A stretch of DNA of 64,000 nucleotides from Geosiphon pyriformis uo1 (lineage: Eukaryota > Fungi > Glomeromycota), in assembly GCA_016748015.1 (NCBI GenBank), contig JAAOMT010000684.1, positions 124,001 to 188,000 on the forward strand. The letters run 5' to 3'. The notes beneath the pieces were generated by a model, which searched no databases, was not told the origin of the DNA, and saw nothing but the letters and a program-made list of their open reading frames with translations. Numbering within the stretch: position 1 is the first letter of the stretch; every line of letters begins with the position of its first letter. Shown in pieces: positions 1 to 62,989 of the stretch. Position numbers and translations under genes: made by a program.

Positions 1-3000
1 AAAAAGCTTGAAAGTTTAATCAATTTAATTTTAAGATTATTTAACTTAAAAACAACAAAAGTATAAATATTAAAGCTTACAGTTAGTATATTAGTAACTT
101 TTATAAAAAAAACATCTAAAATTATATTTGAATTAAAAGCCAGTATCAAAAAAAATATCAGTCTGTAGAGAAAAAATGACCAAAAACAATACATTAAATT
201 TGGAAAACATACTTAAAATCTTATTTAATAGTAGTTCTAAATTTTGCTTAAATATATTCAATCTTAATTTCAAAGTCAAAAACCCAAATTTTAAAAAGGT
301 TTTATCTAAAGTGTACTTAAATTATTATTATGTTCAAAAAAATAATTAAAAAAACTATTTATACTTAATATTTTTTATTAAAAACAATCAAATATAAAAT
401 ATAAACATTTTTTTTGCATAAAACTAACAAGTTAAGTTTAATTTAAATCTGATAATATATGTTTAACAAATTTTTGGTTGAACTTTTAAAAAATTATATT
501 TTAATTCAATATAACTAAAATATTTACAATTTTTATAGTAAGTTTAATTTAAGACAAATTAATTTTACTAAACACTAAAATTATACAATAAGTTTTATTT
601 AAATATTTTTTAGTTTTAAAACAAATTGTAATATATCTTATTTTATTATTAATAATAAAATTATAATTAATAATACATTTATTTTTCTTATAATTTTTTG
701 TTTTAGCTTAATAAAATATAATTAAATTAATATTATCTTATTAAACTTAAATACAACTATAATAATTGTTTTTTTAAAAGCATTTATTAAAATTTTTTAA
801 CAATTATTACTAATTTAAATATACAGAAAATTTTTTAAAATTATTATTTACCAAAATATTTTTATTTGTAATTAATATTATAGTTTTTTTTAAACTAGTC
901 TTTAATATAAACATAAATCTAATAATTTTCTAATTTTTTTTAATAATTTATAAATTAATATTCAAAACAAAATTATTTTTTAATAATTATTTATACTAAC
1001 TAATTAAATTTCAAAACAATAAAAAAAGTAGATAGAATTAATCTTTTTTTATTATTAAATAGAAAAAATACTAATTTATTGGTATTTAATCTTTTTGCTT
1101 TTAAAATATTTGTTTAAGAGATCAAAAAAGTTTTACTATTATTATCTGTTTTAAATCTAATATTAATTACTATAAGTCATTTTATCTTCTTTTTAAATTA
1201 GTTTTTATGTTGTTATATTTCTTAATATTAGCCAAACTTTTATCCAAAAACAAAATTATTTGAGTTTTTAATATTTTTATTTATGTTTTTTGGCTTTTTT
1301 ATAAAAGTATTATCAATAAAATTATAATTAATTCTTTTTGTTACCTTTTTTAAATATATTGTTACTAGTAGTAGTTATTAGTTTCTAAACAAAAAAATTT
1401 GTATTTTGTAAAAGTATTAAATAATAAAACAGAAAAAAACAAAAACTTTTTTTTTTAAGAAATTTGGAGAAAAAAGAAGTTTTTTTATTTTATAGATAGT
1501 AATTAATATGTATTTGTTAAATAAAATAATAATTAATAATATATGTTTTATTTTTATTTAAATTAGATAATTTTATATATTATATAGCTTAATTTATATA
1601 TATAAATTTTCTTTAATATTATCAATAATTTTGTTTTTAATATTTCAAATTTTTTTATCTTTTACTGTTTTTATATATATATTAATAAAGATAAATTATT
1701 TATTTATTATTATTTTGTATTAATATATTTGATATATGTTTTTTGTTATAATTTAATAAGTTGTATCTTAAATAATTTTTTTAATAATATTATAAATAAA
1801 ATTCTCTATAGTTTTAATAAATTTTTTTATTGTTTTTGTTAATTTTATTAATTTGGCTAAGTATTAATCTGAAAATATAATTGTTATAATAGTTTAAAAA
1901 ATTAATTTATTATTAATTTAATTTAATGTTGAACAATAAAATTAATTTATTACAAAAACAAAAAAAAATAATATTATATTTATTAATTATTAAAAGTTAT
2001 TATTTGTTAAAAATTGAAATTTATTTTTTTAAGCTAAAAACTATTTATATATATACATATTCGTAATAATGCAAAAGAATAGTGTAAAAGTACTATTTAA
2101 AAACAATTATTAAGTTATAACAACTATGTTAAATTATTTTAAGTTATTTTATATTATTTTATATTATTATAAATTAATATTTTACAATAATTATTTGTTG
2201 TAAATTATTTTTAATTAAGTTAATTACTGTGCTAATTATATAACTAGTTAGTAAATAATTTAATTATTAATTTGTATTTGCAGAATTTTATTTAGATAAC
2301 AATAATTACTTCTTTATTAATGTTTAAAATTTAGGTTTAATATTTTTGTTTGTAATAATATTCTCTTTTTTAGTTAGTTTAATTGCAATTATTTTCTTAG
2401 ATTCAAATCAGAATAATATTTCTAATTTTTAAAAAAATAAACATTTTTTTAAAAACTATTAATAATATTGAATAATTTTTTAACTGTTAATTTTTTATAA
2501 ATTAAAACAAAGATGTTGTTTTTTTTAAAATAATTATGAAAAATCATCTTAATCTTTATATTATTAAAGCTTTTATGTTTAAAGAAGATTAAAAATAATT
2601 ATATTTAACAATACAACTATTTTTTAATTTGTATTTATATTTGCAAAGATTTTATTATTGCTGTAACTTAAATTGGAAATTTTGTTATTATTTACATTTT
2701 GATTAGGACGGTAATTCGTAATTGGTGCTTTTTTGCAAAATTCAAATAAGTAATAGAAAAATTAAATAATAACAAGAAAACAGTAGACTTTTTCTTAGAT
2801 GCTTTGGTTTTTTTGGTTATTTGTATTGTAATTAATAATAGAATTTAAAAAAATAATAGTTTGGTTACTAATTTGTTGTTAAAATTCTTGGGATTTTTAG
2901 CAGTTATAGTAATAATACTAGAGTTATTTTAAGTGTATTTTTTAATTAATAACAGACTTTTAATAAATGCAAATAAATTGTTTTTAAAGTTTTGTTTGTT

Positions 3001-3400
3001 TCTAAAATATCCAAAAATGGTATCTTTGTAACAGTTTGTTTATTTATCTTATTTTTTGTTTTAATTATGATTATAAATTTTAAAGAAAAAAATCATTTTA
3101 TATATTTAAATATTAAAAAAACTTTATTTACATTTTTATTAAAAAATATTATGTAAATAAAATACAAATAATAAGAGTTATAAAAAATACATAAATTAAA
3201 TTATATACAGTATTTTAAACTTTACATAATTTATAAAAATTCAACAAAATTAAAGAAAACATATTAAAACTTTATTTTTAAAAATAAAAAATTCAAAAAT
3301 AATTGCTAATAACAAATTAAATTCAGTTTATCATGAAAAATTTCGGTATTTAACAACAAATTTTTAGATATTTAATGAAACTATTATAGTAAACTTGCCA
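1..3400. other. Extremely AT-rich, C/G-depleted block, probably heavily mutated repeat/transposon-derived DNA
   Basis: No ORF of 60 aa or more; G and C are rare and CpG is almost absent; composition normalises near 3.4-3.7 kb. Confidence 0.55.
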
Positions 3401-3694
3401 TTATCTTTGAAAACAAAAAGAAAAAAAGTATTTAATTAATGTATTGAAATTTACAAAATCAACTGAATTTACAAGGAACAATATATATTATTATCGAAAT
3501 TAGGACTAGAATAACATATAAATAGAAGGCTATTAGCATACACCCAACTAATAAAAATTAATTTACATTCCACTTGCAAATATAAATATTATCAATAACA
3601 ATAATAATAATACTTTTAATAATAATAAAATAATAAAAATTTGTGTTCATCAAAAGATTGCATCATCAATAGACATTAGTATGCAAATTTTTCA

Positions 3695-4400
3695 TGGGTA
3701 CACGACAGCCAATCATAAATTCGGGTGCATTTTCCACAAAAAACGGCTTAGCTATTCGACTTGCATACTTGGGATCGTTATCTTCTTGAAAGCGTCACTT
3801 CTTCCCAAGTATTCCATTAAATTCCCAACATCTGGTACAAAATTTCAAAATAAAGCCTGGCATTCATGATACGCCGAAAATAAATTGGACAAACTGGCAA
3901 TTTTTCTCTGTGCAAATGTTCAATTGTGTTTGGCAACAGTTGAAACGCTGTTTCATCCAAAATAACGTTTTTTTCAGTCATAAGCATTGAATAAACCATA
4001 TATCTAATATAAAGCTTCCATATGCTTCACCAGTCATACGTGAAAGAGTACGAATCAAATGATTCAATTCTTGTCCGCTAATCCATCCACTTTTAACAGT
4101 CGCTCGTGTATAATCAGAGTTGTAAAGCTCTCTTTTATGACAGCATGCACAAAAATTTTCATGTAAATTGGTGCTTATAAAGGATTCGTCTGTCAAAAGA
4201 ACACATTGCCAATCCTCTTTGATTTAATGATTGTAGGTTTTAGTCCATTATAACAATGATTTCTTTAATTTTAATTGTTTAAGATGATCTTAACACAATT
4301 AGTGGACCATCCAAATTTTTACACCAGACATACCTTCTTTCTTGAGCATTTTTACCGCAAAAAATTTATTTTTACAAAGATCTTTTTGGGGACCCATTTG
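3695..4400 (-). mobile_element. Degenerate Tc1/mariner DDE transposase relic (copy 1)
   Basis: The minus strand gives VILDETAFQL (first catalytic D), IMNARLYFEIL and, after a frameshift and stop, RFQEDNDPKYASRIAKPFFVENAPE, matching the Tc1 FQQDNDPKHTS motif. DNA-level similarity to 25410-25640. The upstream boundary is uncertain. Confidence 0.8.
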
Positions 4401-40505: not shown

Positions 40506-41924
40506 TTACTTTGGACAGAAACCCATCATATGACCAAAATAAGGACCATTATGAGCAACACTACCTATATTAATATATTGATTATTGCATTCCTTTAAGA
40601 ATCAAAAGATTGTAAAATTCTTAAAAATTTTCAAGGCTGAAAAAAGCAAATTTTCTTTGAATTTACAACTTAAACTTGAAATCTTACCTGACTTTCATTT
40701 CTAATTCTTTTTATTCCATCAACTAAAGGTCCTTGACAAAACCAAACTTTCTCAATTATCTTCATTTTATCATTCCAAAATTTGTCGTCTCCATCTTTTT
40801 CACAATCACATTTATATACATGCTCAACCCAAAATTCATTCCGTTGATGTTTCCATATTAATGCTGAATTTTGTGACTGTTCACTGTAATCAAAGGGCAA
40901 TCTTGAAACAAAATCATCCCCAATTGTAATTCGAAAAGTTTTTAAAATTTTCTTGCCTATGGAATCAATATAATGAGAAAATGCCTGATCACCAAGACGA
41001 GGTTGTCCAAAAGTGTATACTTCAATTAGGAATGGAAATTTGGACGGAAGATGAGGTACAGTGAAACTTATTCCTGCGATCATTGCAAATGCTTGAAATA
41101 CAAATAATCTTTTATTCAGAATTGTCTTAATTCGAAAATATGAAACTTTAATTTAATAGACGTAATTCAAAAACGAAATGGAAATAATATTTTTATTTAC
41201 CTCCACCTAATCCATGCCCAATAAACATAGCCTTCTGAATTTTTTTGGTCCCTATTTCTTTCAAAATTTTTTGCTCAATATTTCCTCGAATAAGTCGAAA
41301 CTGATTTTGGAAAAACTTTTCAATTTTGATCATTCTAAGGTTATAATGTCTTGCCATCACAAATTTTTTCACTCGCCATTCATCAAGTGTATATTCGGAT
41401 TTAAAAGTGACAATTAGTATTTGTTTTTTATTGGTCATGTCTTTGATCGCTTTTGCCTTGACTAAAAAACGACAAATAGAATATTTATTAATGTCAATAT
41501 ACAGTATAAGAAATTTTTAAAGAAAAGTTACCATTTTACCAAAAACATCAAGACCAACGGCATCACGACTTTCTTGATTCATACAATACGAAAAACTCGC
41601 TTCTCTTGCAGAAAACTGTAAATTTGACAGTCTAACTTTAAATTGTTCTCCAATCAATTGAATTTTTGAACTTCCATCTTCTCTGAGGTTTAAATTGTTA
41701 AAATTTGATCTCTTTATTAGCAAAGTAGTTGAATTTTTGAAATAAAAATTTTGTAGTGATATTCTCTGTGTTGTATTAAGAATTTTTATCATTGATATTT
41801 CAATTTTAGATGTTAAACTTTTTTGAAGGAATCTTAAAGTTGATGATAAAAGATTGGATAATAAAATAATGAGAAGGCATATATTTAAAAATAATTTATA
41901 TTTCTTCAAGAATATGTTCATCAT
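40506..41924 (-). CDS. Class-3 lipase-fold protein lacking the catalytic Ser (4 exons)
   Basis: N-terminal hydrophobic segment, SYC, FIGHGLGG, YTFGQPRLGD, DFVSRLP, EFW; last exon ECNNQYINIGSVAHNGPYFGHMMGFCPK-stop. Confidence 0.87.
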
Positions 41925-46166: not shown

Positions 46167-48239
46167 TCAAACCTCGGAAAAAGCTGGAATAAATTGTGCT
46201 CGGGTGATTTGACTATCCCTCATTGGATGAGATCGTGTCTCTTCTCTTTGCCGCGCAGAGCTAGTCTCTGAATTTTCAGAACCAGATCTAGTTGTCGTAT
46301 CTGAATTTTCCACAACAGCTCGAGGTACCTGAGTATATAGATGACTCGATGTTAAAGACGAGCCATCTACATCTCTAAATTGTCGTAAGAAACTTGCATC
46401 GGCCACAAAATCTCTTAAAAAAAGTTCAAGGGAATCGTATCGCCTTTGCAAATGAAGAATATACTGATTCAAAGTATCAGTATCTGAAGTAATTGGATAT
46501 TGAAGACGGGTATTATCATACATGGGAAGCACAGGAAACAATTCACGTATTTGTCGGTTTGTCTTTTTAGCGAAACAACAACCATAAAAGTGAATAAGGC
46601 CCCAAGGTTGAATCAATTCATTACCTGATAAAACTTGGTTATCACAAGCATACTAAAAAAATCAATCAAAAACGGTTAAAAAAGTAAACCTTTTACCAAA
46701 GATCATTGTATATATTAACTTCATTAGACACAAAGCTCCACCAAATAAAGCAAATAAATTTACAACCTATAAAAAGAAATTTTGAATATTAAATTTTTAA
46801 TCATTGTGAACATTCTCATTTTGGAAAATTCATTTGCTTACCGTGTGACACCTGAACATCTCGAAAAAAAAAAATTAATTAATTTTGCGTAGGATTTTTT
46901 AGTTTTGTTTGATTCATTTAATTTTGAATTATTACATAAAGTACCTCTCTTCGGTCTCTACATTAACCAAAAATGTTTTTGGAATAAGTGAAAGCCGGGC
47001 AAAGTATAATGAATCAGTGATATTTTCTCTCAGAGATCCACTCTCTGTAACAGAATAAATGAAGATGAGCTTAAATTATGTATAAAAATTATGTAAAGTA
47101 AAACATATAAATCATAATAAGTAACCTAGGGAAGTAGTTATGTAAGGAAGAAGAATCTGATTTTTTGTTTGGATTCCTAACGTTTCCAATCCTTTAGAGT
47201 ATATTCGCTTTTTGATTGTCCGAGCGAAAACGAGAATATATGCCTAAAAAGTTGAACACGAAGAGAAAATTCTGAATAAAATTATAGGTTTTGGGTTTAC
47301 ATTCAAAATTTATCAATCAATCAATTAATCAATCAATCAATTAATCAATCAATCAATTAATCAATCAATCAATTAATTAATCAATTAATCAATTAATGAA
47401 TGAAAAAGCCCACCTGACGATATATCAAATAATGTGAATTTTTTGAAAAAAGAGTTCGCCCAAATTGTTTATTTGAGCCCAAATTTTGTATCTTGAAGGG
47501 ATTAAGTTCTTCAATGAAATCAAATCAAGCAGAAGATGAGTTTCGAAAATCATTGAAAATCTAAAAATCTCTTTTTTCTAAAAGTTTTACCTCGATCATA
47601 TGCTGAAAGAAGAATGGGACTTTGAGTATCTATACTTGAGTTGTAAGCTGGGTCTGTAAGGAAAAAATAAAAAGTAGTTCCTAGAATTCCTTTGGGATCA
47701 AGTTTTTTTGGCTTAATATTGATAGTATGGCCAACAGTAAAATTTCCAATATAGGCTTGGTCATCTTTATTAAAAATAGGTTGATTTATATACTGGTTGC
47801 AAATATTATCCCTCAAATTATCTTCGCTTTCATCTAATAAAAATTTTTTGGATACATTTATTTTAATCAAATTTCAAAGTTACCCCAAAAAGTTTTTCAA
47901 ACTCTACTCACCATTGTAATTGAACACACAACTTATTTTAAATGAGGTCCTGAATCTCATAAATAAATCTGCGTATTCATTTGTTAAAAAATGAAATTTT
48001 TATATATAAAATCGTGTTATTTGTATAAAGAGAAAAGTGACACTACCTGGTATTGGTAATTCCAAACTCCAAAAGTTTGTAAAGCGAACAAGTTTTATAT
48101 CATTTAAAATTCCAGTAATCAAAATGATGAGGTACCCACAAATGCAAACAAGAAAAGTGAATTTTACTACAAATCGAACCACTGTGATGGAAATGTGCTC
48201 CCTTGAACGATATTTTTGAAAATAATGTTTTAAATCCAT
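46167..48239 (-). CDS. Two-TM membrane protein, PAC(TMEM206)/DEG-ENaC-like architecture, paralogue A (multi-exon)
   Basis: TM1 ...FLVCICGYLIILITGIL then LELPIP; Cys-containing beta-rich loop; LIPKTFLVNVETEERCHT; TM2 VVNLLLLFGGALCLMKLIYTMIFG; PWG..CC; LQRRYDSLELFLRDFV. The gene is well supported, but the channel assignment is inference. Confidence 0.75.
47312..47400. repeat. (TCAA/TTAA)n tetranucleotide array within an intron
   Basis: atcaatcaatcaatta units repeated. Confidence 0.9.
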
Positions 48240-49615
48240 GAATTTGAATGAAATATTTTTAAATTGTTTGGTAAAATTTTTCAAAAGAACAAAAACAAGT
48301 GAAAATAATTTTCTTGAGAATAAATATTCTGCTTAAATTGATTTATAACAGGAATTTCTTCTTTTAGATATCGAATTAGGAATACTTGTAATAATAATTA
48401 CTATTTCCTAGTAACTTGCTAACCTCTTTGTGACAATCCTTTGTTTAATTGAGAAATTAATTGAAATTAATATTGTATTACTCTATCCAAAGATTGATGT
48501 TGATCATACCTTTAATAATACTGCTCCCTATTTTCTTATTCTAGAAATTAAATGACATCTATCATGTGCATCGGCCAAATATTACCTGTGTTGGAATGTA
48601 AACCCTATTTTCTGATATTTGAAAGGATAAAATGACATCTATAATCAGATATTGACCCTTTTTTGTTAGAAAGGGATGTACCATTTCGATTGTTCTAATC
48701 ATATTTATAGACAAAGTAAAAAGATTTAACTCTATTCGGAAGAAACTTTTTGCCAACATAAAAAATTTATTATTATTATTAATGAAAGGAGAACGTTCTG
48801 ACTTATATATAAATTGTCCTGGAAAGGAAATTTATATTTGAGCAAAAGTTTCAAATACTCCTTAATTAGAAAGGAACCTCAATTTAGTTTTTTTATTTAT
48901 GAAAAAGGAACTATCCCCGATATGTATTCGAATGACAAGTGAAATAAATTTTAATAATTTTTTAGTTAAAAGAATTATTTAAATTTGTGATTTTTCATAT
49001 TTATGAATATTCATTTCTTCGCTTTTTTGTAAAGTTTCAAAATTTAAGTGTCATTAATTAGTTTTTATTAATTCTTATGTCTTTTTTTTTCATTAAGTAA
49101 AAAGTCAAGAATTAAATACTTTAAACATATTAAAATGGATAGGTCTGCTGCTGCGGTTTTCTTGAACCTTAATCCTTTAGACTTAAAATAAAAAATTAGG
49201 GGTTATTTTGAATAAAATAGTTTAATAGATGAGTTACAGCTTTCACAATAAATCAATCATGAAAATTTTCTTTTGGACCGAGAAAAAGAAATTTTATAAG
49301 GTTAAGTTCTAGGATCATATTTATTCAGATATGGTAAGTCCCAGAGACTTGAAATTTTTTCAATAAAAATAAATAAAACTAAACGATTACATCGACAAGA
49401 GCATTCAAAAGATATTGAGTTTTTCATAATGATATTGCATATAGAATATTTTACATATTTATTTTCTTTGTAATTTAACTCATATTTATACAAAACTACA
49501 GAGATTCTATACATTTTTACAGATATATATTTTAAACGAAACACAACAGAACAGAACAGAACATGAATAAAATGATAGTAATTTTTTATCGAGAATATAA
49601 TTTTTTTCTTGAATT

Positions 49616-50872
49616 TTAAGATGAAACAGTTGGCTGAAATTGCCCTAAAAAAGCAGTATTACCGTAATTTTCAAATGATTCAATTGGCAGTGAGGGTAAC
49701 TTTATTGTTGATGATTCTTGTGAACAGAGAGTGTCAAAAAAATTGGAGGGAAATTCGTCAATGGTTAAAGTGTCTTCGTCAATCTCAGCCTCAATTGTAG
49801 TGGATTCATGATCGGTTTGAGAAACAAGAGATTGTTTTCGAGATGGTACCGGAGTACTTGTACCCCAAACGTGATTTCCTAAACAGACTCCCAAAGGATA
49901 GGGTGATTCATAGAAGTGAGATTGATTATTTAAAATCGGAGGAAGCAGACAGTAATGGGTATGTATTAATTGTGGCGCTGACGCTGACGCTCGAGAAGAA
50001 ATGGGAGATTTAAAAATTGGAGCCAAGTTAATATTACAGTTTGGAACATCCTTTGACCAGCAGTGAATGTTTTCATCAACCAATTTATTGCCATTAAATG
50101 AAATATTGGAATAAATATTTGAATAGATTGGAGCAATATTTGAAGAATGAGATTCTTGAAAATCATTGATTGAAGTTTGTGAATGCTGAGAAGATTCAAA
50201 AAATCCTTCCGAAAGTTGAATGATTGGAGAGGTTGAGGCTGAGCAGGAGATATCTTGGTGAAAAATCGAATGTTGATTGGTTGAGTGTTCGGTAGAAAGC
50301 GAAAAATTTTCGTTTGGAATGGATCCAAAATTAGAGCTAAGATTTGGGGATAACATTTTTCGTTGAGCAATTGGACGGGCCAGAGCTAAGGGATCAATGT
50401 AAAAGTTCGATCCTTGGGTGATAGTGTTTGAGAAATCATTGATTTCCTGTTGGGAAGGATGATAGTATTCTTGGTTTGATAAGATATATTGTTCTGAGCC
50501 ACGACGAAGATAAAGTTTTTCCGCTTGCAAGGATAAACGCGTGTAAGTATCTTTAACAAACTCTGATTCTTGTTTCCAAGAACGTGAAATCATTGGACTA
50601 AGCTCAGTCATAGAAAGATGAATTCCCTGACTCTTGAGATATTGAACATACTCTGCTCGATAGATGATAAAGGCGTTCGGAAACCGTGCTAAGGTTTTTT
50701 TGGTAGAAATTTTTGAGACCAATCGTTCGGCATCAGTAATTGGAGGAAAAGGTAGAGGAATAGGGGGCAAAACAGTTGTTGGTTTTTTCGTTGCAAACCT
50801 CAATCTATGTTGCATCGTACCGTTTTTTTTATTTGAACCGCCCTGTCTTTTGGTTTCTTTCATGTTTGGCAT
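49616..50872 (-). CDS. MATA-type HMG-box transcription factor (fourth, divergent; intronless, 418 aa)
   Basis: PFPPITDAERL...RFPNAFIIYR...LSPMISRSW...VKDTY; long Ser-rich tail. Confidence 0.92.
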   Translation of the reverse strand: MPNMKETKRQGGSNKKNGTMQHRLRFATKKPTTVLPPIPLPFPPITDAERLVSKISTKKTLARFPNAFIIYRAEYVQYLKSQGIHLSMTELSPMISRSWKQESEFVKDTYTRLSLQAEKLYLRRGSEQYILSNQEYYHPSQQEINDFSNTITQGSNFYIDPLALARPIAQRKMLSPNLSSNFGSIPNENFSLSTEHSTNQHSIFHQDISCSASTSPIIQLSEGFFESSQHSQTSINDFQESHSSNIAPIYSNIYSNISFNGNKLVDENIHCWSKDVPNCNINLAPIFKSPISSRASASAPQLIHTHYCLLPPILNNQSHFYESPYPLGVCLGNHVWGTSTPVPSRKQSLVSQTDHESTTIEAEIDEDTLTIDEFPSNFFDTLCSQESSTIKLPSLPIESFENYGNTAFLGQFQPTVSS

Positions 50873-51090
50873 TTGATAAAGCTTTAGATTTTTTGTCTTA
50901 ACTTACGGCAAATTTGATCTTCACTTTTTATTTTGAGTAAAAGGAGGAGTGAAGAAAAAAAAAAGCAAAGGAAAGGAGATGGTCTTTATATAAGATATTT
51001 TGATGCAGATAAGACAATGAAATAAATGTGAAATGTATAGAATAAATATATATTTGAACATGCACTAGGTTTTCAATTACTTGCTCTAAA

Positions 51091-51183
51091 TTTATTATTA
51101 TTATTTATTATTATTATTATTATTTATTATTTATTATTTATTATTTATTATTTATTATTTATTATTTATTATTATTTATTATT
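51091..51183. repeat. (TTATTAT)n-like low-complexity repeat upstream of the fourth HMG gene
   Basis: Tandem ttattat units. Confidence 0.85.
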
Positions 51184-52062
51184 GTTGTTATGATCGTTAT
51201 TATTAAATTTCTCTTTAGAATTGATCGTGAGTACCTTCAAGTTTTTACTTTCCTTTCGTTGATTTGTGACATATAAATTTTTATTGTAATATTTTTAACA
51301 TGATCTTTTTTGAATTCAAAGATTGCCATTTCGGATTTTTTTAATTTTAGTTTAGATTCAATGGGCTATAATTAGAGAGTTCTTTAAATTTTTAAGAGCA
51401 TTTATGGGAAAAGAATATCAAATTCAAACCTGTTTTTTTTTATTGTCCAGTACTACTAATGATTTTTTTACAACAATGGGCTTCCTTTCATTGAAGTCAT
51501 TGATTTTAAAAAAGACTGAAATAAATCTGGTGACGTTTTTTTTTGTGACACCTTAAAATGAAAGGGGTTAACCAATTCTGAAGAGTAAAATAATTTGAAA
51601 AAGGATTATATATAATTTTTTGATAAGAGAAAAAAAAATTTCTCATTTTATATGAAAACACCATTTTGTATTCTGAAATATAATATTTCTTTGTATTTAC
51701 AATTGTAATTTCTGATGTTTAATTTTACATAATTAACCGGTAAGATTTCTAGAAAAGGGGGTGGTGGAGTACACGATTCAAGGATCCTAAACTAAAATTA
51801 TTTTTAGAATAATGTAATTGATTTTGAGTTTTTTTAACAAATTCATAATTAGTTTACTGAAGATCACATCATTTTGATTTAATCATTTCTTTTGTTTCAC
51901 AAAAGAGTTAAACCTTTTAAATGATAAATTTTATTTAGGTTGATAAAAGATATGTATTACTTTTATTTTTGTAATTGTACCTTTTTGCTTATTTTATGAC
52001 CGTGCTGCGTTACCAATTTATTTTCAAAACGAAAATGTATTCTTTGTATGGGGTAAACAGTT

Positions 52063-52063
<1 letters not shown>

Positions 52064-52107
<44 letters not shown>
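52064..52107. repeat. Poly-T run (~44 nt)
   Basis: Uninterrupted T homopolymer. Confidence 0.95.
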
Positions 52108-52114
<7 letters not shown>

Positions 52115-53085
52115 CATTAAAAAATTTGAATTGTTTCTTTCTCAAAAGTTTAATGAGATTGTATTAAAAGTTGAATGATGTTTTCTAAATAAATTGTTCT
52201 TTCGTATCCTGGTGAAACCATGTCCCCCATTTCGAATTTTAAAAAAAAAAACTGGAATATTGTTTTGAAAATAGACTGAATTTATTAATAGAGATTTTTA
52301 TATATATAACTCTGCTTTATTTATTTAAACCAGTTGCGCGCAGGATTAACGTATAATATAATATATATATATATATATTTTTATATTTCGATTTAATAAA
52401 TCGTTTTCAAAAAGTCTCGGTGATTTAATTTCAAAAAAAAAAAGATGAGTTTTACGCTTTAGTCTAATGTAATATCAAAATTAAGCGCCAAAATCGGCAA
52501 AATCTAGACACATGTGACATAATACTATACATAAATAGATACGAAATTTGACGATTTATTCCGAAAATAATTTCAAATGGGTTTCCAAAAAAGTTTGGTT
52601 CCAAAAAACATTTTTAGATGTTTTTTCTGCAAGACGAAATGTGAGTTTCCCGAAATAGTTTTTCCCAGATTTGATCTAATTTTTAATTTTTTTTTTTTCA
52701 AGTCTTTTTTGAATGAATATTAAGGATAACCCCCGAGTAAAACGAAATTTTTTGTAACAAAAATAAATAAATGAAATTTGGTTTCTATTTGGAAAATTTT
52801 ATTTCTGATAAAAATTTATCAAAAATGAGTATTAAAAAAATAATAATCAAACTGATGATCTTATAAATATTAATAAACTCACATTTGCATGAGACTATGC
52901 AAAGTGAAGTCTCTAGCGGATCATTAAGTTAAATTTAGACTAATATGTTTTAGTTATATTATCATTGTGAATGGTAATAGAAAAGAACCTTGAATAAAAT
53001 TGTTCCGTTACGCCCTCCAACAGATTTTTTTTTCCAACTTATTCTTTATGAAGAAAATCCCCCAAGTCTAAATTTGAGTTCTAGA

Positions 53086-53088
<3 letters not shown>

Positions 53089-53128
<40 letters not shown>
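53089..53128. repeat. (ATT)n microsatellite
   Basis: Direct reading. Confidence 0.92.
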
Positions 53129-55896
53129 TTGTAAAGAAAATTTAAAAAGATTAATACTTTTTAGATATAGATAAATTTTAAATTAAACTTCCCTGCATTA
53201 ACGAGTGCTATGGTCTTTAAAATCTTTAGCTCTGTGTGACCAAATATTAAAAATATGAATCTTCAAAGCACATATTGATAATTCTCTTCTTAATCTAAAT
53301 ACCGAATCATTAGAATTAAAAATAGCTCGGGAATTCAAAATAATATCTTTATTTATTTTATTTCTAATAAAAGAACTCTAATCTTTACTACTTGTTTAGT
53401 TTAGAATGAACCAACTTTTTTTTTTGATATACAATAGCATGCAATGCATATCAATCTTGGATTGTTGAACCACAATAATTTTTTTGTGGGAATACAAATT
53501 TTTTTATTAAGTCTGTACCGCACGGAAGACAGCGTCGTGTACCGTAAACAGGTAAAAAACTAGAATAAACTTGATTCGTGTTGATCAACTTCTTCCAGAA
53601 GTTTCTTTTAAAAAAATGAGGGAATCTTGCATATTAATCATTTCGATAATCTCGGAAATTAAACATTTGAAAATCTATATATTTGCTTGAAATTTGCAAA
53701 GAACTTTGGAAATAATTTTATTCATGATTATATTTTTTTTTTTAAAGATTTTAAAAATGATAGAATAAATAATATTTTTTTTTTTGGGTTCACTTTCAAA
53801 GAATTAATAATCAAAGAAAGAATTAATTTTATTCATCTTTTCAATTTTGAAATTCTAAAGAAAATAAAAAATCGAAAACAATATATATATTATTAGTGTT
53901 ACTTCATGGATGGTTAAACATGAGAAAATACGTAAGACTTTATAAATTTTTTTTTCAAAGGTCATGTAAAAGAAACAATAAACTATTCCTTTAATAGATG
54001 ATGTTTATTATTAATTAACTCAAAAAAAGATAATTTTAAATCATCTTCAAGTAACTTAGTAGAATTTATAATTAAATGAAGTTTATCATTTTCACTTTAT
54101 AAAGTAAAAAATTGAAACGATTAAAAAAATTAATTATTTACTGTGATATAAAAGGTTTTTTTTATGCCGAATTTATTAATTTGATTCTCAAAAGAATATA
54201 TTAATACTTTGAGTTTCATAAAAATATTTGATTTCCCTACTTGTGCAATTATTAGTTGAAAATAAATGCTAAGGTATTTTAAGACTAAAAATGGCTGAAC
54301 AGCAGCATATTAAAAGGAGAACAAAGAAAATTCTTTTAAAAAAAAACTCAAGTCAGGTTGATTCATAGTAAAATAATGTTTATTGTCTCTTGATTGGAAG
54401 GAATTATAATTAGATTTTGTGTATAAAAATAGACTTTTTATAAGTCATTTTACTATTTTTATTAAATCTTTGTAGAACATTCTTTTTAATCTTATTCTAA
54501 AAACAGGTGCCCTAAAAGTTCCCATTCAAAAATTGAATAAAACCTGGATTAGAGTTTATTAAAAATGAAACTAGATTTTTTGTAAGCTAGTGAATACCCT
54601 TTCAGTAATTTTTCGTATTTTCTCATTATCCTGTAATTGGTTTAGCAAATTTCAATTATACACTTATAAAGTAGAAATTTTTCTTTCCAATATAGGTCAA
54701 GGCAAAATGGAATTTCAACAAGATATTATCAAAAGGATCGGGAATTCATGGTACATTCAACGTAAAACCTATCATTCCATTTTTAGAGAATAATAAGAAA
54801 TTTGGGTTTGGAGTTACTTCGTTTTTTGTGTCCGAAATTTTCGATTTTAATCAACTTCGCGCATATATCTGGAATATTGACTGATTGAAACTTTTTTTCT
54901 CGGTTCACAAAACTAAAATGATCTCATTCTTCCAAAATAGATACTATGTGAAAAATAAATAAATTATCACATACTATCTTTATCTTGGAGAAAAAAACAT
55001 TTTTTTTTTGACATGTCAGATATAGATCATTAATTTTTCCCAAGACAAAGGACTTTAATAAAAAAGGAAATATCAAAGAGGCGTAAAATCTAAAAATAAA
55101 CAGGCATCACAGAACAAAAATTTTGTACAAGGTAATTCAACGGGGAAATCAAGATCTAGATGAATTATATTGTGTGTTATCGAAATACTATAATTTTTAT
55201 CGAGTTTAATTTCAAGCTTTCAATTAAACTATCCCACAATCTACAGCGAAAGGAATTTTTGGTGGGTAAAACTTTTATGGTTTACACCTTTTTCTTAGAA
55301 AAATTTTAAGTTTCGTGTATCGGAAAGAATTTTTCCACAAAAAGTTAAAGCTTTCCGGACGGGACATATTTACTTGCTGAGTTTTTAAATGGAAAATTTT
55401 ATTGTTGAAAATTTAATTATGTGCCTTTATATTTTTAGCTTTTTTCTTTTAATGATTATTATAATAAAGCGGAATTAATCATGAGATTATCTACAAAATT
55501 GCTTTTTCATATAATTGGAGAAGAGTTTTTTTGTATTTCAATTGAAAATTTATAGCAAAATAAAAGATTCATATGAATAAATTCGAATAACAAATAAAAA
55601 AAAGTCAAATATTTTATTGCTTATGAAAGGGGAATGTAATTTATTTATTTTAATCAAACAAATCAATTTTTTGTAAAATGACTTTTCGTTTGATCATTTT
55701 TGTTAATATTATTATATTTTTTGACAGAAATTATTATTATTTTTTTTTGACAAATTAATTTTAAATGTAAAGATAAATTTTTATGATTACTTTATTTTAT
55801 TTTAGTATATTAAAAATGTAATTATCTTTCTAATTGGCTAATTGTTTTTTTTTTAAAATTTAAAAAATAATAATTTATAAAAATAAACATATTAAA

Positions 55897-55913
55897 ATAA
55901 ATAATAAATAATA

Positions 55914-55967
<54 letters not shown>

Positions 55968-55978
55968 TAATAAATAAT
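55897..55978. repeat. (AAT)n microsatellite
   Basis: Direct reading, with a few interruptions. Confidence 0.92.
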
Positions 55979-57492
55979 CATGATAATATATTTTAATATT
56001 TAAATTTTGAATTAATAACTTATTTATTATCGTTTTTTTTAATTACTTTATTATGGTATTAAAATATAATTTTTATCATATTTCAAAATTAATTGATATT
56101 TTTTTTTGATTATGTCACTTTTTTAAATATATTCAAAAGAATATAATTATTTTATCAGTGGTTGGTTTCATAGAATTTAATCACTGAATTTTTTCAAACT
56201 TGGTTTATATAGAAAATTATCACTAAATCTCAATTTATTCAGAATTCCCATTTTTTATCTAATATTTGCAATTATAATTTACTAAAATTTAACATTTAAA
56301 AGTTCAAAAATATCACATTATTTGAAGTATCCGAACCTTTAAGACACATGACTGACAAAATTTATTATTTTGATTAACCATGTACAGCCAAATAAAAACC
56401 AGAGATACAAAATAAGGGGAAATAATATTGGAATAGTAGATATACAGCTTACATTATTGTTTCAGAATATAAAATGTGATATTTTAATGACAATAAATTT
56501 CTCATAAAATTTGGAATGTCATGACATTTAGACCATAACCAATGAATTTTAAAGTGAAAACCTCCGGTCAAATAAGGAAGATTATTTATTAAAAATATTT
56601 ATATTTTACCTAATATATTAATATGATATAAATATATCTAGGGAAAAACTAGATGAAATTTTCTATCTCTTTTAAAATCATAATTTTTCCTTATATAATA
56701 ATAACTAAAATTTATTTTCAAAAAGAAATTTCAACTATTTAATTTTTGTGTAGCGAACGTATTTCAAATTGAAAAACGTGCTTAAAATTTTGTTTCATAA
56801 AAAAAGAGGCAACTTTGTAAAAAGTATTTGTCTTACATGGTTACTTGCAATTATTGCTTTTAATATCAGTTAATGAAGATGTTTTTGAATACTACATTTC
56901 TAATTTGGACTTTAGGATATTGTCTACGGAGTCAAGCCTTTGCAGTTTTGATTGTTGAGAATTCTGAAAAAAACATTAAATTTCAAGTCCATGTACTTTT
57001 TCTGTGATAAACTCTAATATTTATTAATTCAATTATATGAACTACATGGGGAACGATAACTTTTATCGTTTACCTAGTGAAAACGATAATCATCATTTAT
57101 CCCCAAACCAAAAAAAAATTGGGACAAATATTATGTTGAAAAGCTGCGAAATTGAACCTGTCTTAATATGACTCCATGAAGGAAAGAATCACCAAAGATC
57201 ACTCTATATTAGCTATTGTAGATTCTCCATTAGCTAAAGTTCAAATTAAATTGTATCAAAGAAAATCTTCTAATGTCAAATTAAGTGAAAATTAAGTGCA
57301 TAGTATTAAAAAAATCAATGGCTTTAGCTTCACATTGTTATTTCGAGTGTTTTGATAGGGCCCTACCTAGTGCAAAATATTCATTAGTTTCAGAAAACGA
57401 GAAAATTATTGATTGTGATAATTATTGATTATGATAAAATTTGAGCAAAAATTTAAAGAATAAAAGAAATACTCTTCTCATCATTATCATAA

Positions 57493-60445
57493 ATGAAAAG
57501 AATATCTCAAAGTTCCTTGTCAGCTCTTTTACCACTCCTTCATTTAAACACACATGTCATTGGATTTACGGAACTACAAGATGAACTTTTTGCACATCAA
57601 ACAGAATCTTACTTTGATGGAACTTTAATCACACAAATGTCAAGGCGTAGAAAAAATATTTGTCTAGAGCCAAAAATACAATTTCGAATTATTCTCAGTT
57701 AAAAGTTGGCGATTTTAATTATTGCAATGATACAATTCAATTCTGGATGCCAGAGAAAGACCACATATTATTGTCATATTTGAATGAAATAGAAAGTGGA
57801 GGCTCAAAACAATAATATTTAGAATCATTAAGAGTTTCGTTAGAGGGAAAAATTTACGAGTAGAAAAATTTCAAACTTATCAAGAATTTAACAATGCTTT
57901 TGATCGTTTCAAATTTTTAACTAAACCTTTGATTCTTATTCTCGAAAAGAAAAATTGTTTTTGGACAAACCTCAGATTTACTCTTCTTAAGTAAGAGGGG
58001 ATCTGTTATTATGGGTCCAAAAAACTCAACTTTTCACTTATGGACACAACCTAATGAATCTAAAAGTATTTTATGCATTATTTCTTCATAAGGTAGGTCA
58101 AAAAATAAGTATCTGTATTTGTGAGATTCTAAAACTCAATTTAAGAAAACATCTTTTCTTGTTTCAAAAACGTGATAACAGTCTACTTCAAATAAATAGT
58201 AGCAAGAATATAGATTTCGAAAATATCGTTTCTTATTCGAAATATCCATTGAGAGGAGGCGACTTTGGAATTGGTAATGACGACACAAATAATTGATAGA
58301 AGCGATTCTGGGAATAGTTTCACCGGGAAACTCAATGATGTCTTTTTACCAAAAAAAGCTCTTGATAGTAGCACAGATAATTCCTTACCACCAAGTTCGT
58401 CTCTAAAAACTAAACCTGACTTTTCACCATCTCCTGTTGTGACTAATTCTATTCTTAATTCCAACTCGAATCGAAATTCAAACACCATTTCTAATTTTAA
58501 TTCTAATTCCTACCAAACCATCCCAAACGTGCCCCTGACGATCAATTCTCAAATTCCCAATTCATCCCTTCTGAAAAACAACAGCGCCAACTCAACTTCA
58601 ACTTCAATTTCAACTTCAACTTCAATTAAAAGAACAGGAGGAGGGAACAAGAGAAAAAGGGACATTTCAAAAACAATGAACTACTCAGCCAAAGTGACTG
58701 GCGCTGTTTCTCGAGATGTGGCTAAAAGAAATTTTGAAAAGAGATTATTTTTACAACAATCAGATATTCAACTAAACGACAATAATACTATTTCTGTTGA
58801 GAAGTTAATTACTTATTATGGCCTTTCTTGCAAACAAGATAACGGTAAGCTCTTTGAAAGATTATAGGAAGTTTATTTTAAAATCTCACCTCTTATAAAT
58901 AAGGTTTGCCTGGAGGTACAAATGAAAAATTCTCCATCAACCTATCTTATGATACTATCAAATTGTTCGCGAATTTATATGATAGGATTCATATTGTGGC
59001 TAATGCTTCAAACGAAGTTTACCTATATCGAATAATTTCCGCTGATAATGACACCACTGATATCACGCTTTCCGAGATTCCTACAAATTGTATAACACCA
59101 AATTTGATGCCAATAATACACTTTGGTGTTTTCTGCCAGCTGCCAAGAATGTTTGGAAATTTATTTTAAAAGATATATCCTTAATAAATGGTAACTATTT
59201 TTTAATGGTTGCATACTCTTCTAATTATGTCCCTGGCTGATTTATCTTTTGGGCTTTTTATAACTATGATCATTATTTGGAGACGGCGTGAGATTAGCCT
59301 TCCAATAATTTTTCGTAAACATCATCGTCAACCTAAACTTGAGCAGGGAAACATAGATGGCTTGGACATAAATACAATCACTTTTCGTGAAAACGTGGAT
59401 CTTTAAAACCTTTTTTCATTGATTCAGATCAGCTGATTGATCCACTGACGTCCTCAAACATAAATAGTATGTCAGCTAAAGAAGTATGCTAATTTCAAAA
59501 ATGAATTTTAAATTTTCATTTATAAATCTATGTAACTGACATAATTCTTTTTTAAAGTACAAATTCTATTACCTATAAGAATACCATTCGACTATTCAGA
59601 ATCACGAAGGAGTCAAATTACGCTATTCATTGGTTTTGCAATATGCGAATAATGGGACTATTTGGCTCTTAAAGTTGAAAACCTGACTTGGAAAGAAAAA
59701 CTTGCTCTGGCTTCTGACGCTTCTTCTGGTTTGCAACATCTTCACGCTAATGGAATTCTGCACAGATACCTTGTAATATTCGTAATTTTATAATTCTTGA
59801 ATCGCCCGAAACTTCAGTCTTAAGACTTTAACGATTTTAAACTTATTTATTCACAGCATTCCATGAATATTTTGATTCATGATCGTGTTTCACTACTAAC
59901 AGATTTTTGGCTTGTCCAAAATGGTCGACGTCAGTAATGACACACTTCCCAGTCTCTACATGGGATGATACCTTTTATTGATCCTGACCGACTACAAAGT
60001 GCGAGTTATCCTCATGATTTTCGAAGTGATATATGTGGATTAGGGGTCATTTTTTGGGAAATTCGAGCGGTTATTGGCCGAGGCTGGAGAATACAGCTTA
60101 TTGGTGGATATAATAAACGGAAAGCGTGAAACACCAGTTCCTGGTACGCCAAAGGAGTATATTTTACTTTATCAAGAATGCTGGGACTATAATCCCGAGA
60201 ATCGTCCAAATATTGTAAAAGTGGTGGAGCGATTGGAAATTATGCAGGAAAAACAAGAAAAGAAAATCGGTAAATATGAGTTTGATTTCTATAGCCAAAA
60301 ATTGAGAAATAATCTAACAAACGTCTTGTTTGGAAACAATAATTCCCATCCAGTTCCGACAAATAGAAATATACAAACTGAGGACTCACGACAGATTTTT
60401 CTGTCAGTACCCACTATATTGCCACCAACCGGATCAATGGACTAG
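57493..60445 (+). pseudogene. Decayed putative single-pass receptor-like TKL kinase
   Basis: Kinase motifs from ~59600: LTWKEKL, GLQHLHANGILHRYL, HSMNILIH, TDF/GLSK (frameshift), FIDP, GKRETPVPGTP, CWDYNPENRP. They follow a hydrophobic segment ending WRRR (~59215-59290) and fragmented upstream ORFs. The kinase part is firm; linkage to the upstream ORFs is tentative. Confidence 0.6.
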
Positions 60446-60923
60446 AGGAACAAACTAATTTCATCGAAAATATTACGATTCAAAAGATTACTTGATGACT
60501 TGCTTTCTCCTTTGAGACCAGAGAATAGGAAATAAAAGAGGACATATTCATCTCATAGATTCAAGTTCATGCTCTTTTGAAAAATTTACCGTTCACCTGC
60601 CATAATTTGATCTTTTGTTTTATGCAAACTGTCAAATTCCTGCTTATTTCTTTAATTAGCTTTCATGGTCGAGGTTAATGTTTAATTCAGAAAATAGGTC
60701 TCTCAATACTAATCAGAGTCAAGGAGGCAGCGAGGTAAATAAAATATAAAATTTGAATAACATTAAAGATTGTAGACTTTAAAAAGTAAATTTTAGAGTT
60801 CAAGAACAATTAAATTATTAATTAAAATTACAAATATTAATAACAGGCCAAATTTGCAAATATACAATTTTAATACCCAACAATTGTCCGTATTTTGTTT
60901 GGTTTTTTTTCCTCCAAAATCGG

Positions 60924-62989
60924 CTAAAACATGTTATACTCAACTCGGGCGGTTTCACCCAAACTATCACTTGGTAATAAATGAAGAGAGGGTCGATGTT
61001 CGTTGGTTCCATAAATAATTTGTGGTAAAGCATCGTCGGTTGTATAATCCGAGAAGGCAATGCCGCAAGCTTGCTCGTTATAAATGCTTGAATCTAAATC
61101 TGATCCGGAATCAGTATTTTCTGTTGGGGATCGAGACCGGAAAGCTGTAAATTGCTTCCCTTCCTCAAAAGTTGATATTGGAGAAAAAGGAGCCGCTTTT
61201 TCTTCTCTATATTCAATTTTTCTTTCCATTGGTTTATTTATTGACTCAACCGGTACAACTCTGTTTTCAAACTTTGTGCTGACACGCTCTAAAGGTTCAA
61301 TATTCACAACATATTCTTTCAAGAATAATTCGAGAGCAGAAACACGTTGTTGCAGATGAAGGGTTAATTTTTCTCCGCTCAATGACTTCACTTCATTTTC
61401 ATTTTTTGAAGTCTGAAAAAAAGAGAGAATTGGAGAAATGTTGGCTAGATTTTGTTTGGTCTTGCGAGCCAGCCCGCAGCAATGACTTTGAATGAAACCA
61501 AATGGGCGAAGTGCATTTGAACCTTTTCATAAATAAATATTAATGGTTTAATAGTTGATAGGATATAATCAATTGTAAGAATTTAATTACCATACCAAAA
61601 AGAATTGTATAGATCCCTATAGCCAGAATCCATGCTCCACCTATCAATCCTAAAGACCCTAATATCTATATATTTATGAAGCCACAAAATAAATTACCAA
61701 ATACAGCCAGTAGTCTCACACTACTTGCTTAATAAAAAAAAATGGCTTACCGTGTGTGAACTAATATAGGCGAAATTAAAAAATTTTCAATCAGTACAAG
61801 AAATGAATTTGCATTTTTATTTAGCTTTAAAACTCACCGTTCCTCTGACTCGATATCTACTATAAAGTTCCTTGGCCATAGAGAAACAGCTGCATAATTA
61901 GCAGTCTTTGGGGAAGTTGGCATTGGACCAGTGACTATTATTGTGGAGAAAAAATGTTATGAATATCAAGTCAAATATTATCCATTTCTGCGCTTGTCTG
62001 AAAGATTACCAGAAAGTGTTCTCACAAAGGGAATTTTTTGTTTATCTATCAAAGGTAAACCAAGCATTCCGATCGATTTTGTGGTCAATTTTTCTTTAAT
62101 ACTTCGAGAAAATACTAAAACATTGGACTGAAAAATGACTGAGAATTAGATCGATTGAAAAATTCAGGACGAAGTCAATTGATCTAGTTACCTGCTGATA
62201 TTGAATTGGATAAGAGTTTAGACCAGCTAATCCTTTCAAGAAATTAGCATCATCAATCTCTGGATGTTCAACAAATGGATCGAATCCTTAAGAATAACGA
62301 AAATAAAATTAATTTTCTTTAGTTTTTTTAATGATTTTTTAAACTCGTCCCTTTGCATATTCACCTGGATCATACGCATTTACAGTTATAATATTAACAC
62401 CTTTGAAAGCATTTTGATCATTTGTGTCCACCATCACAGTGACTCCCAAGATTCCATTCTGATCCAGGGTTGAGCTTGATACCGTAAGATCTTTGCCTGA
62501 TTTAAAGAACCCAATATACGTTCCATCCTTGTCTTTAGTTGGTTTGCTAATATACTGATTGCATGCATTTACATCTGTACCAGCTATTAAACAAAATTGA
62601 AAAGATAAATTATTATGGTGACGACTGCCAAAAATTTTTAAAATGGAAAAATACCACTGACCATCTGATGAAAAATAGCAAGAAATGTTGAAGTTTTGCT
62701 TATATTTAAATCTGAGAGCTTTATAATATGTCGAAATCGATTAGAAAAATTCAGCAATTGAAAAAGGGGTCAATGGCTCTTTGAATTGCAACCGACCTGG
62801 TAAAGGAAGGGTATCAGAATTTTCATAAGAAATTTGCAGAATCGGCCCAGCGAAGATTATATCCAAGAAAAGAATAGTAATGTATCCCGAAAATATGGCT
62901 AACAATAAAAGTGTCACGCCACACCTAAGTGCTAATAGTTGAGTCGGCTCACTACGACGATATCCAGATAATGCTTCATTAAAAAACAT
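60924..62989 (-). CDS. Two-TM membrane protein, PAC(TMEM206)/DEG-ENaC-like architecture, paralogue B (multi-exon)
   Basis: TM1 VTLLLLAIFSGYITILFLDII then GPILQISYENSDTLPLP; loop; LWPRNFIVDIESEERSHT; TM2 ILGSLGLIGGAWILAIGIYTILFG; PFG...CC; LQQRVSALELFLKEYV. Confidence 0.78.

Follow-up and report, generated by a model that had tools for sequence, protein, structure and literature searches.

Two paralogous genes of Geosiphon pyriformis for putative trimeric two-transmembrane channels: a proposed fungal branch within the PAC–DEG/ENaC structural superfamily

What do two similar, intron-rich genes on a 64,000-nucleotide stretch of the genome of Geosiphon pyriformis (contig JAAOMT010000684.1; the whole stretch is called the window below) encode? 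Both lie on the minus strand, gene A running from an ATG at 48239 to a stop at 46167 and gene B from an ATG at 62989 to a stop at 60924. A first-pass annotation, made from the letters alone, had proposed that they specify a trimeric ion channel resembling PAC and DEG/ENaC, two-transmembrane (two-TM) proteins with a β-rich ectodomain. Our follow-up analysis bears this proposal out for the predicted fold, the topology and an in silico trimer, but not for kinship with P2X or for membership of PAC or DEG/ENaC by sequence. None of the outcomes that the annotation had named as refuting (an ectodomain lacking a palm-like β sandwich, no structural match to the superfamily, a topology other than two-TM) came about. 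The evidence supports placing A and B in the PAC–DEG/ENaC structural superfamily, as a fungal branch nearest to PAC in size and sequence. We put at roughly 0.62 the probability that their products are subunits with the PAC–DEG/ENaC fold that stand three around a central axis and form an ectodomain-gated ion channel.

Structure prediction and structural searches (AlphaFold, Foldseek) yield a β-rich ectodomain that matches PAC best, followed by ASIC, ENaC and FaNaC. The AlphaFold2 (AF2) model covers residues 1–400 of the gene B product, a protein (P0003) identical to the NCBI entry “hypothetical protein G9A89_001023 [Geosiphon pyriformis]”, and was computed from a 40-sequence family alignment (A2). 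Its mean predicted local distance difference test (pLDDT) score is 81 and its predicted template-modelling (pTM) score 0.68; 208 residues score at least 90, with most of the region 20–280 above 90. Two helices (residues 16–46 and 264–286) flank ~14 β strands. In a Foldseek search of the PDB, the top 18 matches are all PAC/TMEM206/ASOR (best E 3.0e-12, probability 1.00, template-modelling score (TM-score) by target 0.65), followed by ASIC. VIA-align superposes the model on human PAC (7sqg) with Z 13.8 and a root mean square deviation of 3.7 Å over 235 of 270 residues, pairing model residues 17–290 with PAC residues 65–331 and aligning 87% of the PAC chain. ASIC, FaNaC, ENaC, BRTNaC1 and PDPNaC1 reach Z 11–13.5 in the same alignments (ASIC1 13.4, FaNaC 12.8, ENaC 11.7); the model also shows the DEG/ENaC superfamily fold, a palm/β-ball core plus two TM helices. 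In a Foldseek-independent scan of 48,161 representative chains, ranks 1–11 are all taken by PAC, ASIC, ENaC and FaNaC (Z 10.5–13.4); Erv41p comes next (Z 8.2, 164 residues, ectodomain only), and the remainder, helical hairpins, score below 7.

The Erv41p match bears on a different reading, i.e., that the proteins are two-TM cargo receptors of the early secretory pathway resembling Erv41/Erv46 (ERGIC2/3). These receptors likewise carry a luminal β sandwich between two terminal TM helices, Erv41p is the first match outside the superfamily, and an ERGIC/ERV cluster appears in a shape search of the ESM Atlas (TM-scores 0.47 and 0.39). However, the Erv41p score falls far below those of PAC and ASIC and leaves the TM helices unaligned, no family member matches PF07970 (COPIIcoated_ERV), and bona fide PF07970 genes sit elsewhere in the genome (contigs C392 and C631). 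We therefore rejected this reading, under which the proteins would not be channels at all, as hardly credible. ATP-gated P2X channels, the third family of two-TM trimers named in the first-pass annotation, have only gross architecture in common with the fungal proteins (two TM helices, a trimer). No P2X chain occurs among the matches listed, which comprise the Foldseek top 50 and the top 50 of the unbiased 48,161-chain scan; a P2X-like identity was rejected on this ground, and its probability is negligible.

The shape search of the ESM Atlas also matched a cluster annotated with PF15122, the TMEM206 family (TM-scores 0.46/0.49). Besides this, the two-TM module was seen in clusters of 1002-amino-acid (aa) Kelch-propeller proteins, 708-aa proteins and 277-aa proteins, all from Mucoromycota, and a match at a TM-score of 0.50 went to a cluster named “Transmembrane protein”, which bears PF27811 (Y80K_N) and is commonest in Ciliophora. 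A separate feature search pointed, at 0.86, to another cluster with PF27811, this one commonest in Streptophyta. The two-TM fold may thus have a broader distribution among eukaryotes than is apparent from Pfam.

The anatomy of the two proteins agrees with the first-pass description, as the short N-terminus, TM1, the Cys-containing loop of ~200 aa, TM2 with GGA and the P[WF]G..CC motif are all present in both genes; column counts given here come from A2. The N-terminal stretch reads YRSREH in gene A and YRRSEP in gene B (family motif R-[RK]-[ST]-E-P) and precedes TM1, which carries Y36 and spans ~residues 20–44 in both proteins. All features of the two genes lie on the minus strand. TM1 of gene A, directly after the basic YRSREH, is encoded at 48108–48182 and aligns to positions 1–64 of the family hidden Markov model (HMM); TM1 of gene B, at 62858–62932, falls in AF2 helix 16–46 and aligns to PAC TM1. 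The family displays an acidic D..D.P turn at the outer membrane edge and a post-TM1 strand motif, P-[IV]-[IL]-x2-S ... P-x-P. The ectodomain loop of about 215–217 aa (family median 212 aa, with a median of 2 Cys) contains two nearly invariant cysteines, C78 (31 of 32) and C91 (38 of 38), which presumably form a disulfide. Its coding region, introns included, extends from the end of exon 1 to a 10-nucleotide (nt) exon 7, at 46842–48101 in gene A and 61751–62851 in gene B (residues 47–262). In gene B, the ~14 β strands are accompanied by the post-TM1 motif GPILQISYENSDTLPLP, C78, C91 and an ESEER wrist motif, the family form of this “wrist”, E-x-E-x-R-x2-T, being conserved directly before TM2.

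Exon 8 encodes TM2 in each gene (FALFGGAL... at 46697–46766 in gene A; LGLIGGAW at 61596–61665, residues 264–286, in gene B). The family consensus of TM2 is LGLxGGAWGLA..Y..LFG, with G273 in 32 of 33, Y282 in 32 of 32 and G287 in 36 of 37 sequences. TM2 and the next 15 residues are the most conserved part of the protein, with a top-residue frequency of 0.64–0.66 versus 0.37 in the ectodomain. Behind TM2 follow, in order, RPWG, a CC pair, LP.IP, a variable linker and a short amphipathic helix (L..R...LE.FL.EYVVD..YL). Gene A carries the post-TM2 motif as PWG...GCC at 46575–46607, with a candidate palmitoylation pair, and the conserved helix as L..R...LE.FL.D.V.D..FL at 46377–46472; gene B carries PFG...CC at 61476–61505 and the conserved helix at 61284–61364 (~residues 340–366). 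As for the cytosolic coiled coil of the first-pass description, the conserved amphipathic C-terminal helix is there, and a coiled coil is plausible, with about three heptads conserved.

A two-TM topology is also consistent with the charge distribution. Besides the AF2 helices 16–46 and 264–286, Lys and Arg have a median count of 3 in the N-terminus and of 6 behind TM2 but of 0 over the first 15 residues of the loop, and the loop has a median of 3 sequons, all of which fits an N-in/C-in arrangement with the loop outside. PAC (PACC1, PF15122) has the same two-TM, N-in/C-in layout with a minimal β-rich ectodomain of ~215 aa; the fungal family differs in adding a cytosolic tail of ~100–200 aa with RPWG, CC and the conserved helix.

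PAC comes first in sequence comparisons, too. With the A2 profile against all PDB sequences, PAC is the top match (7ji3, E 0.017) and makes up 6 of 7 matches; with a sub-profile of residues 12–150, six distinct PAC sequences are all on top (E 0.0039–0.048). The aligned stretch comprises TM1 and the post-TM1 motif, human H98-P99-V-M-S-V-S104-Y-K-E107-V-D109 ... P114 ... S127-C128, opposite which the family consensus reads D-x-P-i-i-x-t-S-x-e-e-x-D-s-l-P-x-P ... S-C, giving P-x4-S-x2-[E]-x-D-x2-P-x-P ... S-C as the common pattern. The first-pass annotation had noticed this likeness by eye; its PAC strings were accurate, and HMMER aligns the motif to human PAC H98–P114. It had likewise set LGLIGGAW of TM2 beside IALLCGAF of PAC. 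Published PAC TM2 residues are W304, I307, L309, G312, L315, A316 and K319 (PMC6663466), and the pairing of GGAW with CGAF fits I307, L309 and G312 together with the structural offset of 39, by which PAC G312, the site of the common G-A-aromatic motif, corresponds to G273 and Lys319 to residue 280.

A TM2 sub-profile, in turn, matched only BRTNaC1, a DEG/ENaC channel, in the PDB; the match lies at the equivalent β12–TM2 position with a common GG..GL pattern, at a non-significant E of 1.1. DEG/ENaC/ASIC/FaNaC channels (PF00858) have the superfamily fold (Z 11–13.4) and the trimeric two-TM architecture in common with the fungal proteins, yet the fungal ectodomain is ~150 aa shorter and has two conserved Cys, whereas DEG/ENaC ectodomains have about 14. 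The large Cys-rich thumb/finger/knuckle ectodomain is absent, with only ~235 of ~420 ASIC residues aligned, as are the DEG/ENaC GAS belt in TM2 and the HG motif before TM1. With GG..GL in register, A-x-Y would stand at the position of the GAS belt; the alignment itself ends before GAS.

The third line of evidence concerns assembly. Three copies of P0003 residues 12–320 were modelled with ESMFold2 without the family alignment, next to three controls. The homotrimer attains an interaction prediction score from aligned errors (ipSAE) of 0.66 (runs 0.65–0.67), against 0.00 for the best control. Among proteins of solved structure, 21 of 30 homomeric pairs but 0 of 23 single chains come up to the mark applied, counts that are only roughly valid for three copies. 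The runs agree in at least 77% of contacts, with a partner pLDDT of at least 69. The modelled interface is made by β1 (50–57), helix 169–183, strands 226–230 and 247–252, and TM2 265–277. At the three-fold axis, contacts 270–270 and 272–273 bring L270, G272 and G273 onto their own copies in the model. A trimer is thus supported in silico, with the GGAW-bearing TM2 at the axis, and the arrangement predicted for the fungal family is the one found in PAC.

On the proposed mechanism, each subunit would consist of a short cytosolic N-terminus, TM1, a glycosylated β-rich ectodomain of ~215 aa, TM2 and a family-specific cytosolic tail, the last with an RPWG turn, a CC pair that is possibly palmitoylated and the conserved amphipathic helix. 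The fold would be that of PAC/TMEM206 and DEG/ENaC/ASIC, with the ectodomain at PAC size, i.e., minimal. Three subunits most likely surround a central axis lined by the Gly/Ala-rich TM2 (LGLxGGAWGLA..Y..LFG), and the assembled channel would be gated from the ectodomain. We infer that the products of A and B conduct ions. The conserved acidic residues D43, D47, E256 and E258 at the outer membrane edge would favour cations, if anything; sensing of pH or ligands, as raised in the first-pass annotation, is speculation.

Several observations weigh against such a channel. The E-values for PAC are borderline, and a mid-ectodomain sub-profile gave the unrelated 2i71 at E 0.043, indicating that such values can arise by chance; the sequence evidence for PAC therefore counts only in combination with the fold. 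Neither PF15122 nor PF00858 (ASC) matches any of the 40 members, the former at E up to 10. The trimer may pass because the predictor remembers solved PAC and ASIC trimers. Gene A sits on a long branch in the family tree described below and has lost the conserved Pro49, so that constraint on it may be relaxed. Two functional residues of PAC are missing as well. His98 of PAC is the proposed proton sensor (PMC11059273) and Lys319 an anion-selectivity determinant. The His98 column (P0003 residue 48) holds A, D, G, E, V, Q or T, never His where a residue is present, and the Lys319 column (280) holds A, G, T or S in 26 of the 29 members counted and I, V or F in 3; one further member, P0019, has Arg at column 280, and TM2 of gene A has a Lys one position before the Lys319 equivalent. 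Without Lys319 in the pore and His98 in the wrist, the family need not be proton-activated or anion-selective; as His98, Lys319, GAS and HG are all absent, one cannot transfer from the animal channels to this family either activation by protons or selectivity for anions or sodium. Finally, the Kelch-propeller fusions among the relatives matched by shape in the ESM Atlas hint at a role more like that of a receptor.

That hint belongs to the main rival explanation, namely, that a protein of the same fold does not conduct but works in the membrane as a receptor, sensor or scaffold, relaying what happens at the ectodomain to the conserved cytosolic tail, which in some relatives takes the form of a fused Kelch propeller. 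A long and conserved tail without counterpart in PAC, a TM2 without a conserved charged pore residue, and the Atlas match to the 1002-aa Mucoromycota Kelch cluster over model residues 3–341 (TM-score by query 0.60) are all as this explanation would have it. Yet no segment is more strongly conserved than TM2, where G273, Y282 and G287 are invariant, and TM2 lies on the three-fold axis of the trimer model; moreover, among the matches listed, every solved protein with the full two-TM-plus-ectodomain fold is a channel. We consider a non-conducting role rather unlikely, the strongest of the rivals all the same, and prefer the ectodomain-gated channel.

If the proteins are channels, could they simply be PAC? 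True PAC/TMEM206 orthologues, i.e., proton-activated chloride channels inherited or acquired from animals, would explain why PAC is the best match in both structure and sequence, why the ectodomain is PAC-sized and why the post-TM1 motif and the G-A-aromatic motif of TM2 are common to both. However, identity in the structural alignments is only ~7–13%, ASIC and ENaC score nearly as high (Z about 13), the 40 members lack a PF15122 match, none has His at the place of His98, and nearly all have a small residue, Ala or Gly for instance, at that of Lys319. PAC, besides, exists as a single gene, and reports of it come from vertebrates and a hemichordate alone (PMC6663466), whereas the fungal family is large, intron-rich and multigene. 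Orthology to PAC is accordingly highly unlikely. Six-frame genome scans with PF15122 and PF00858 returned nothing at the loci of A and B, and Pfam searches of single exons and full-length relatives gave chance matches only. By sequence, the family is best described as a separate branch and as a member of neither PAC nor DEG/ENaC.

The gene models behind these proteins are well matched to each other. Each gene has nine exons with phases identical between A and B, all introns are GT-AG, and internal stops are absent. Exon lengths (A/B where they differ) are 193, 57, 243/219, 95, 118, 100/97, 10, 70 and 458/599 nt, adding up to 447 codons in gene A and 485 in gene B. The exons of gene A lie at 48239–48047, 47968–47912, 47833–47591, 47508–47414, 47243–47126, 47044–46945, 46851–46842, 46766–46697 and 46624–46167; those of gene B lie at 62989–62797, 62718–62662, 62583–62365, 62286–62192, 62127–62010, 61934–61838, 61760–61751, 61665–61596 and 61522–60924. 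Exon 2 of gene B (62718–62662, AG/GT borders) was set by the deposited protein P0003 together with the family consensus F.ISC.F. The micro-exon 7 of 10 nt is conserved in both genes and encodes (R)CHT in A and (R)SHT in B.

Gene A is represented in the database only by a 181-aa fragment (KAG9287126.1, G9A89_001020; P0002) that spans exons 7–9. The fragment starts at an ATG slightly upstream of the 10-nt exon 7, is identical to gene A over exons 8–9, and omits exons 1–6, i.e., TM1 and the entire ectodomain; our full-length model corrects this annotation. Gene A was compared with the family exon by exon, gene B by way of P0003. The family HMM matches 7 of the 8 testable exons of gene A with E from 1.6e-26 to 7e-3, at HMM positions 1–64, 67–83, 87–157, 195–231, 236–263, 269–290 and 293–392; the other, exon 4, aligns in order at 174–192 and is non-significant alone (E 0.28). 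Since all eight testable exons are collinear with the family HMM, gene A is a full-length member. One sequencing run checked for expression contained only two short, unspliced contigs at low coverage, probably DNA. Much of intron 4 of gene A is occupied by an 8-nt microsatellite, (AATCAATC/AATTAATC)n, with ~16 units at 47291–47418.

Coordinates, exon structure and mutual matches confirm the two minus-strand genes as the paralogous pair of the first-pass annotation. In a six-frame search of the 128-Mb genome, A and B match each other in exon 3 (E 1.5e-5) and exon 9 (E 2.4e-5), so that their paralogy is beyond chance. A maximum-likelihood tree built on the C-terminal 120 columns (the TM2-to-helix region) places gene A with P0005 (99/84) and then with a Geosiphon/Ambispora pair, and gene B with a Gigaspora clade (90/87). 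The two genes do not come out as sisters, which rules out the recent tandem duplication that we had considered and makes the pair an old duplication. P0005, the closest relative of gene A, is an uninterrupted 409-aa open reading frame (ORF) on a 1365-nt contig of Logan SRR14039561; as it lacks introns and family genes have eight, the contig is probably a transcript from a related fungus.

Family profile searches find roughly ten to twelve family loci in the Geosiphon genome. Further loci lie on contigs C537, C615, C700, C474, C657, C571, C787, C718, C352 and C667, several of them on C352 inside ~15 kb; the copy on C615 has in-frame stops inside its exon-3 match, which may be an intron or damage. 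Among 1.8 billion proteins, a profile of the C-terminal exon retrieves 119 cluster representatives. The named relatives sampled, 34 of 34, are Glomeromycotina, from Geosiphon, Ambispora, Paraglomus, Rhizophagus, Glomus, Funneliformis, Gigaspora, Racocetra and Entrophospora; the sole other named match, an archaeal protein (P0113), was discarded as a coiled-coil false positive. A protein homology search in which the 8000 candidates with most words in common with the query were scored gave few matches. A and B thus belong, by their sequences, to a so far unnamed multigene family of predicted membrane proteins of mycorrhizal fungi. The earlier wording of an uncharacterised channel family in early-diverging fungi is borne out, as regards the fungi, for Glomeromycotina only. 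One relative, P0004 of Funneliformis geosporum (CAI2166479.1, 727 aa), contains two complete modules in tandem (TM1-ectodomain-TM2-tail, twice); this is either a genuine fusion protein or the product of a gene model that joins two adjacent genes.

The surroundings of the two genes are AT-rich, with a GC content of 12–37% in 2-kb bins across the window. Between A and B lies an HMG-box gene, a single-exon 418-aa ORF at 49616–50872 on the minus strand (PF00505, E 3e-7). An ORF at 60074–60445 on the plus strand resembles, by the text …CWDYNPENRP…, the last protein kinase subdomain and has no Pfam match at E 0.001; it is convergent with gene B and ends ~480 bp from the gene B stop. A class-3 lipase domain exon is found at 40670–41083 on the minus strand (PF01764, E 7e-10). 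Very AT-rich stretches occur at 1–4000, where GC is 12–19% at the window start, and at 51090–51220, 52058–52128, 53070–53145 and 55850–56000; they include a poly-T run of ~50 nt as well as arrays of (ATT)n/(AAT)n, which lie ~4.7 kb apart and can pair with each other as long, imperfect inverted repeats.

Elkhatib et al. searched eukaryotic groups including Fungi with Deg/ENaC queries and reported candidates only in holozoans, one alveolate and stramenopiles (PMC10507113). Our full-text searches of the literature turned up no paper in which PAC, TMEM206 or acid-sensing channels are connected with Rhizophagus or with mycorrhizal fungi, nor one on the PAC or DEG/ENaC channel families in Glomeromycotina. 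A multigene PAC/ENaC-fold family that folds well and is compatible with a trimer, in the fungi of arbuscular mycorrhiza, would extend this architecture beyond animals and a few protists. Its proteins would be a minimal and divergent template on which to ask what the core fold requires for gating and ion selection, and they would be candidates for the sensors or conductances of a symbiosis in which little is known of the fungal ion channels. More tentatively, the family may form a third, deep PAC–DEG/ENaC branch that bridges both animal families by sequence, with ancestral two-TM channels that would serve mycorrhizal fungi as ligand- or proton-gated channels; we regard this as possible but doubtful. 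It would build on a TM1/β1 motif that looks PAC-like and a GG..GL motif at β12–TM2 that looks DEG/ENaC-like, the latter a suggestive, non-significant match. Were it true, trimeric two-TM channels would have been present in the common ancestor of animals and fungi, and arbuscular-mycorrhizal fungi would possess ligand- or proton-gated channels, possibly at the acidic symbiotic interface.

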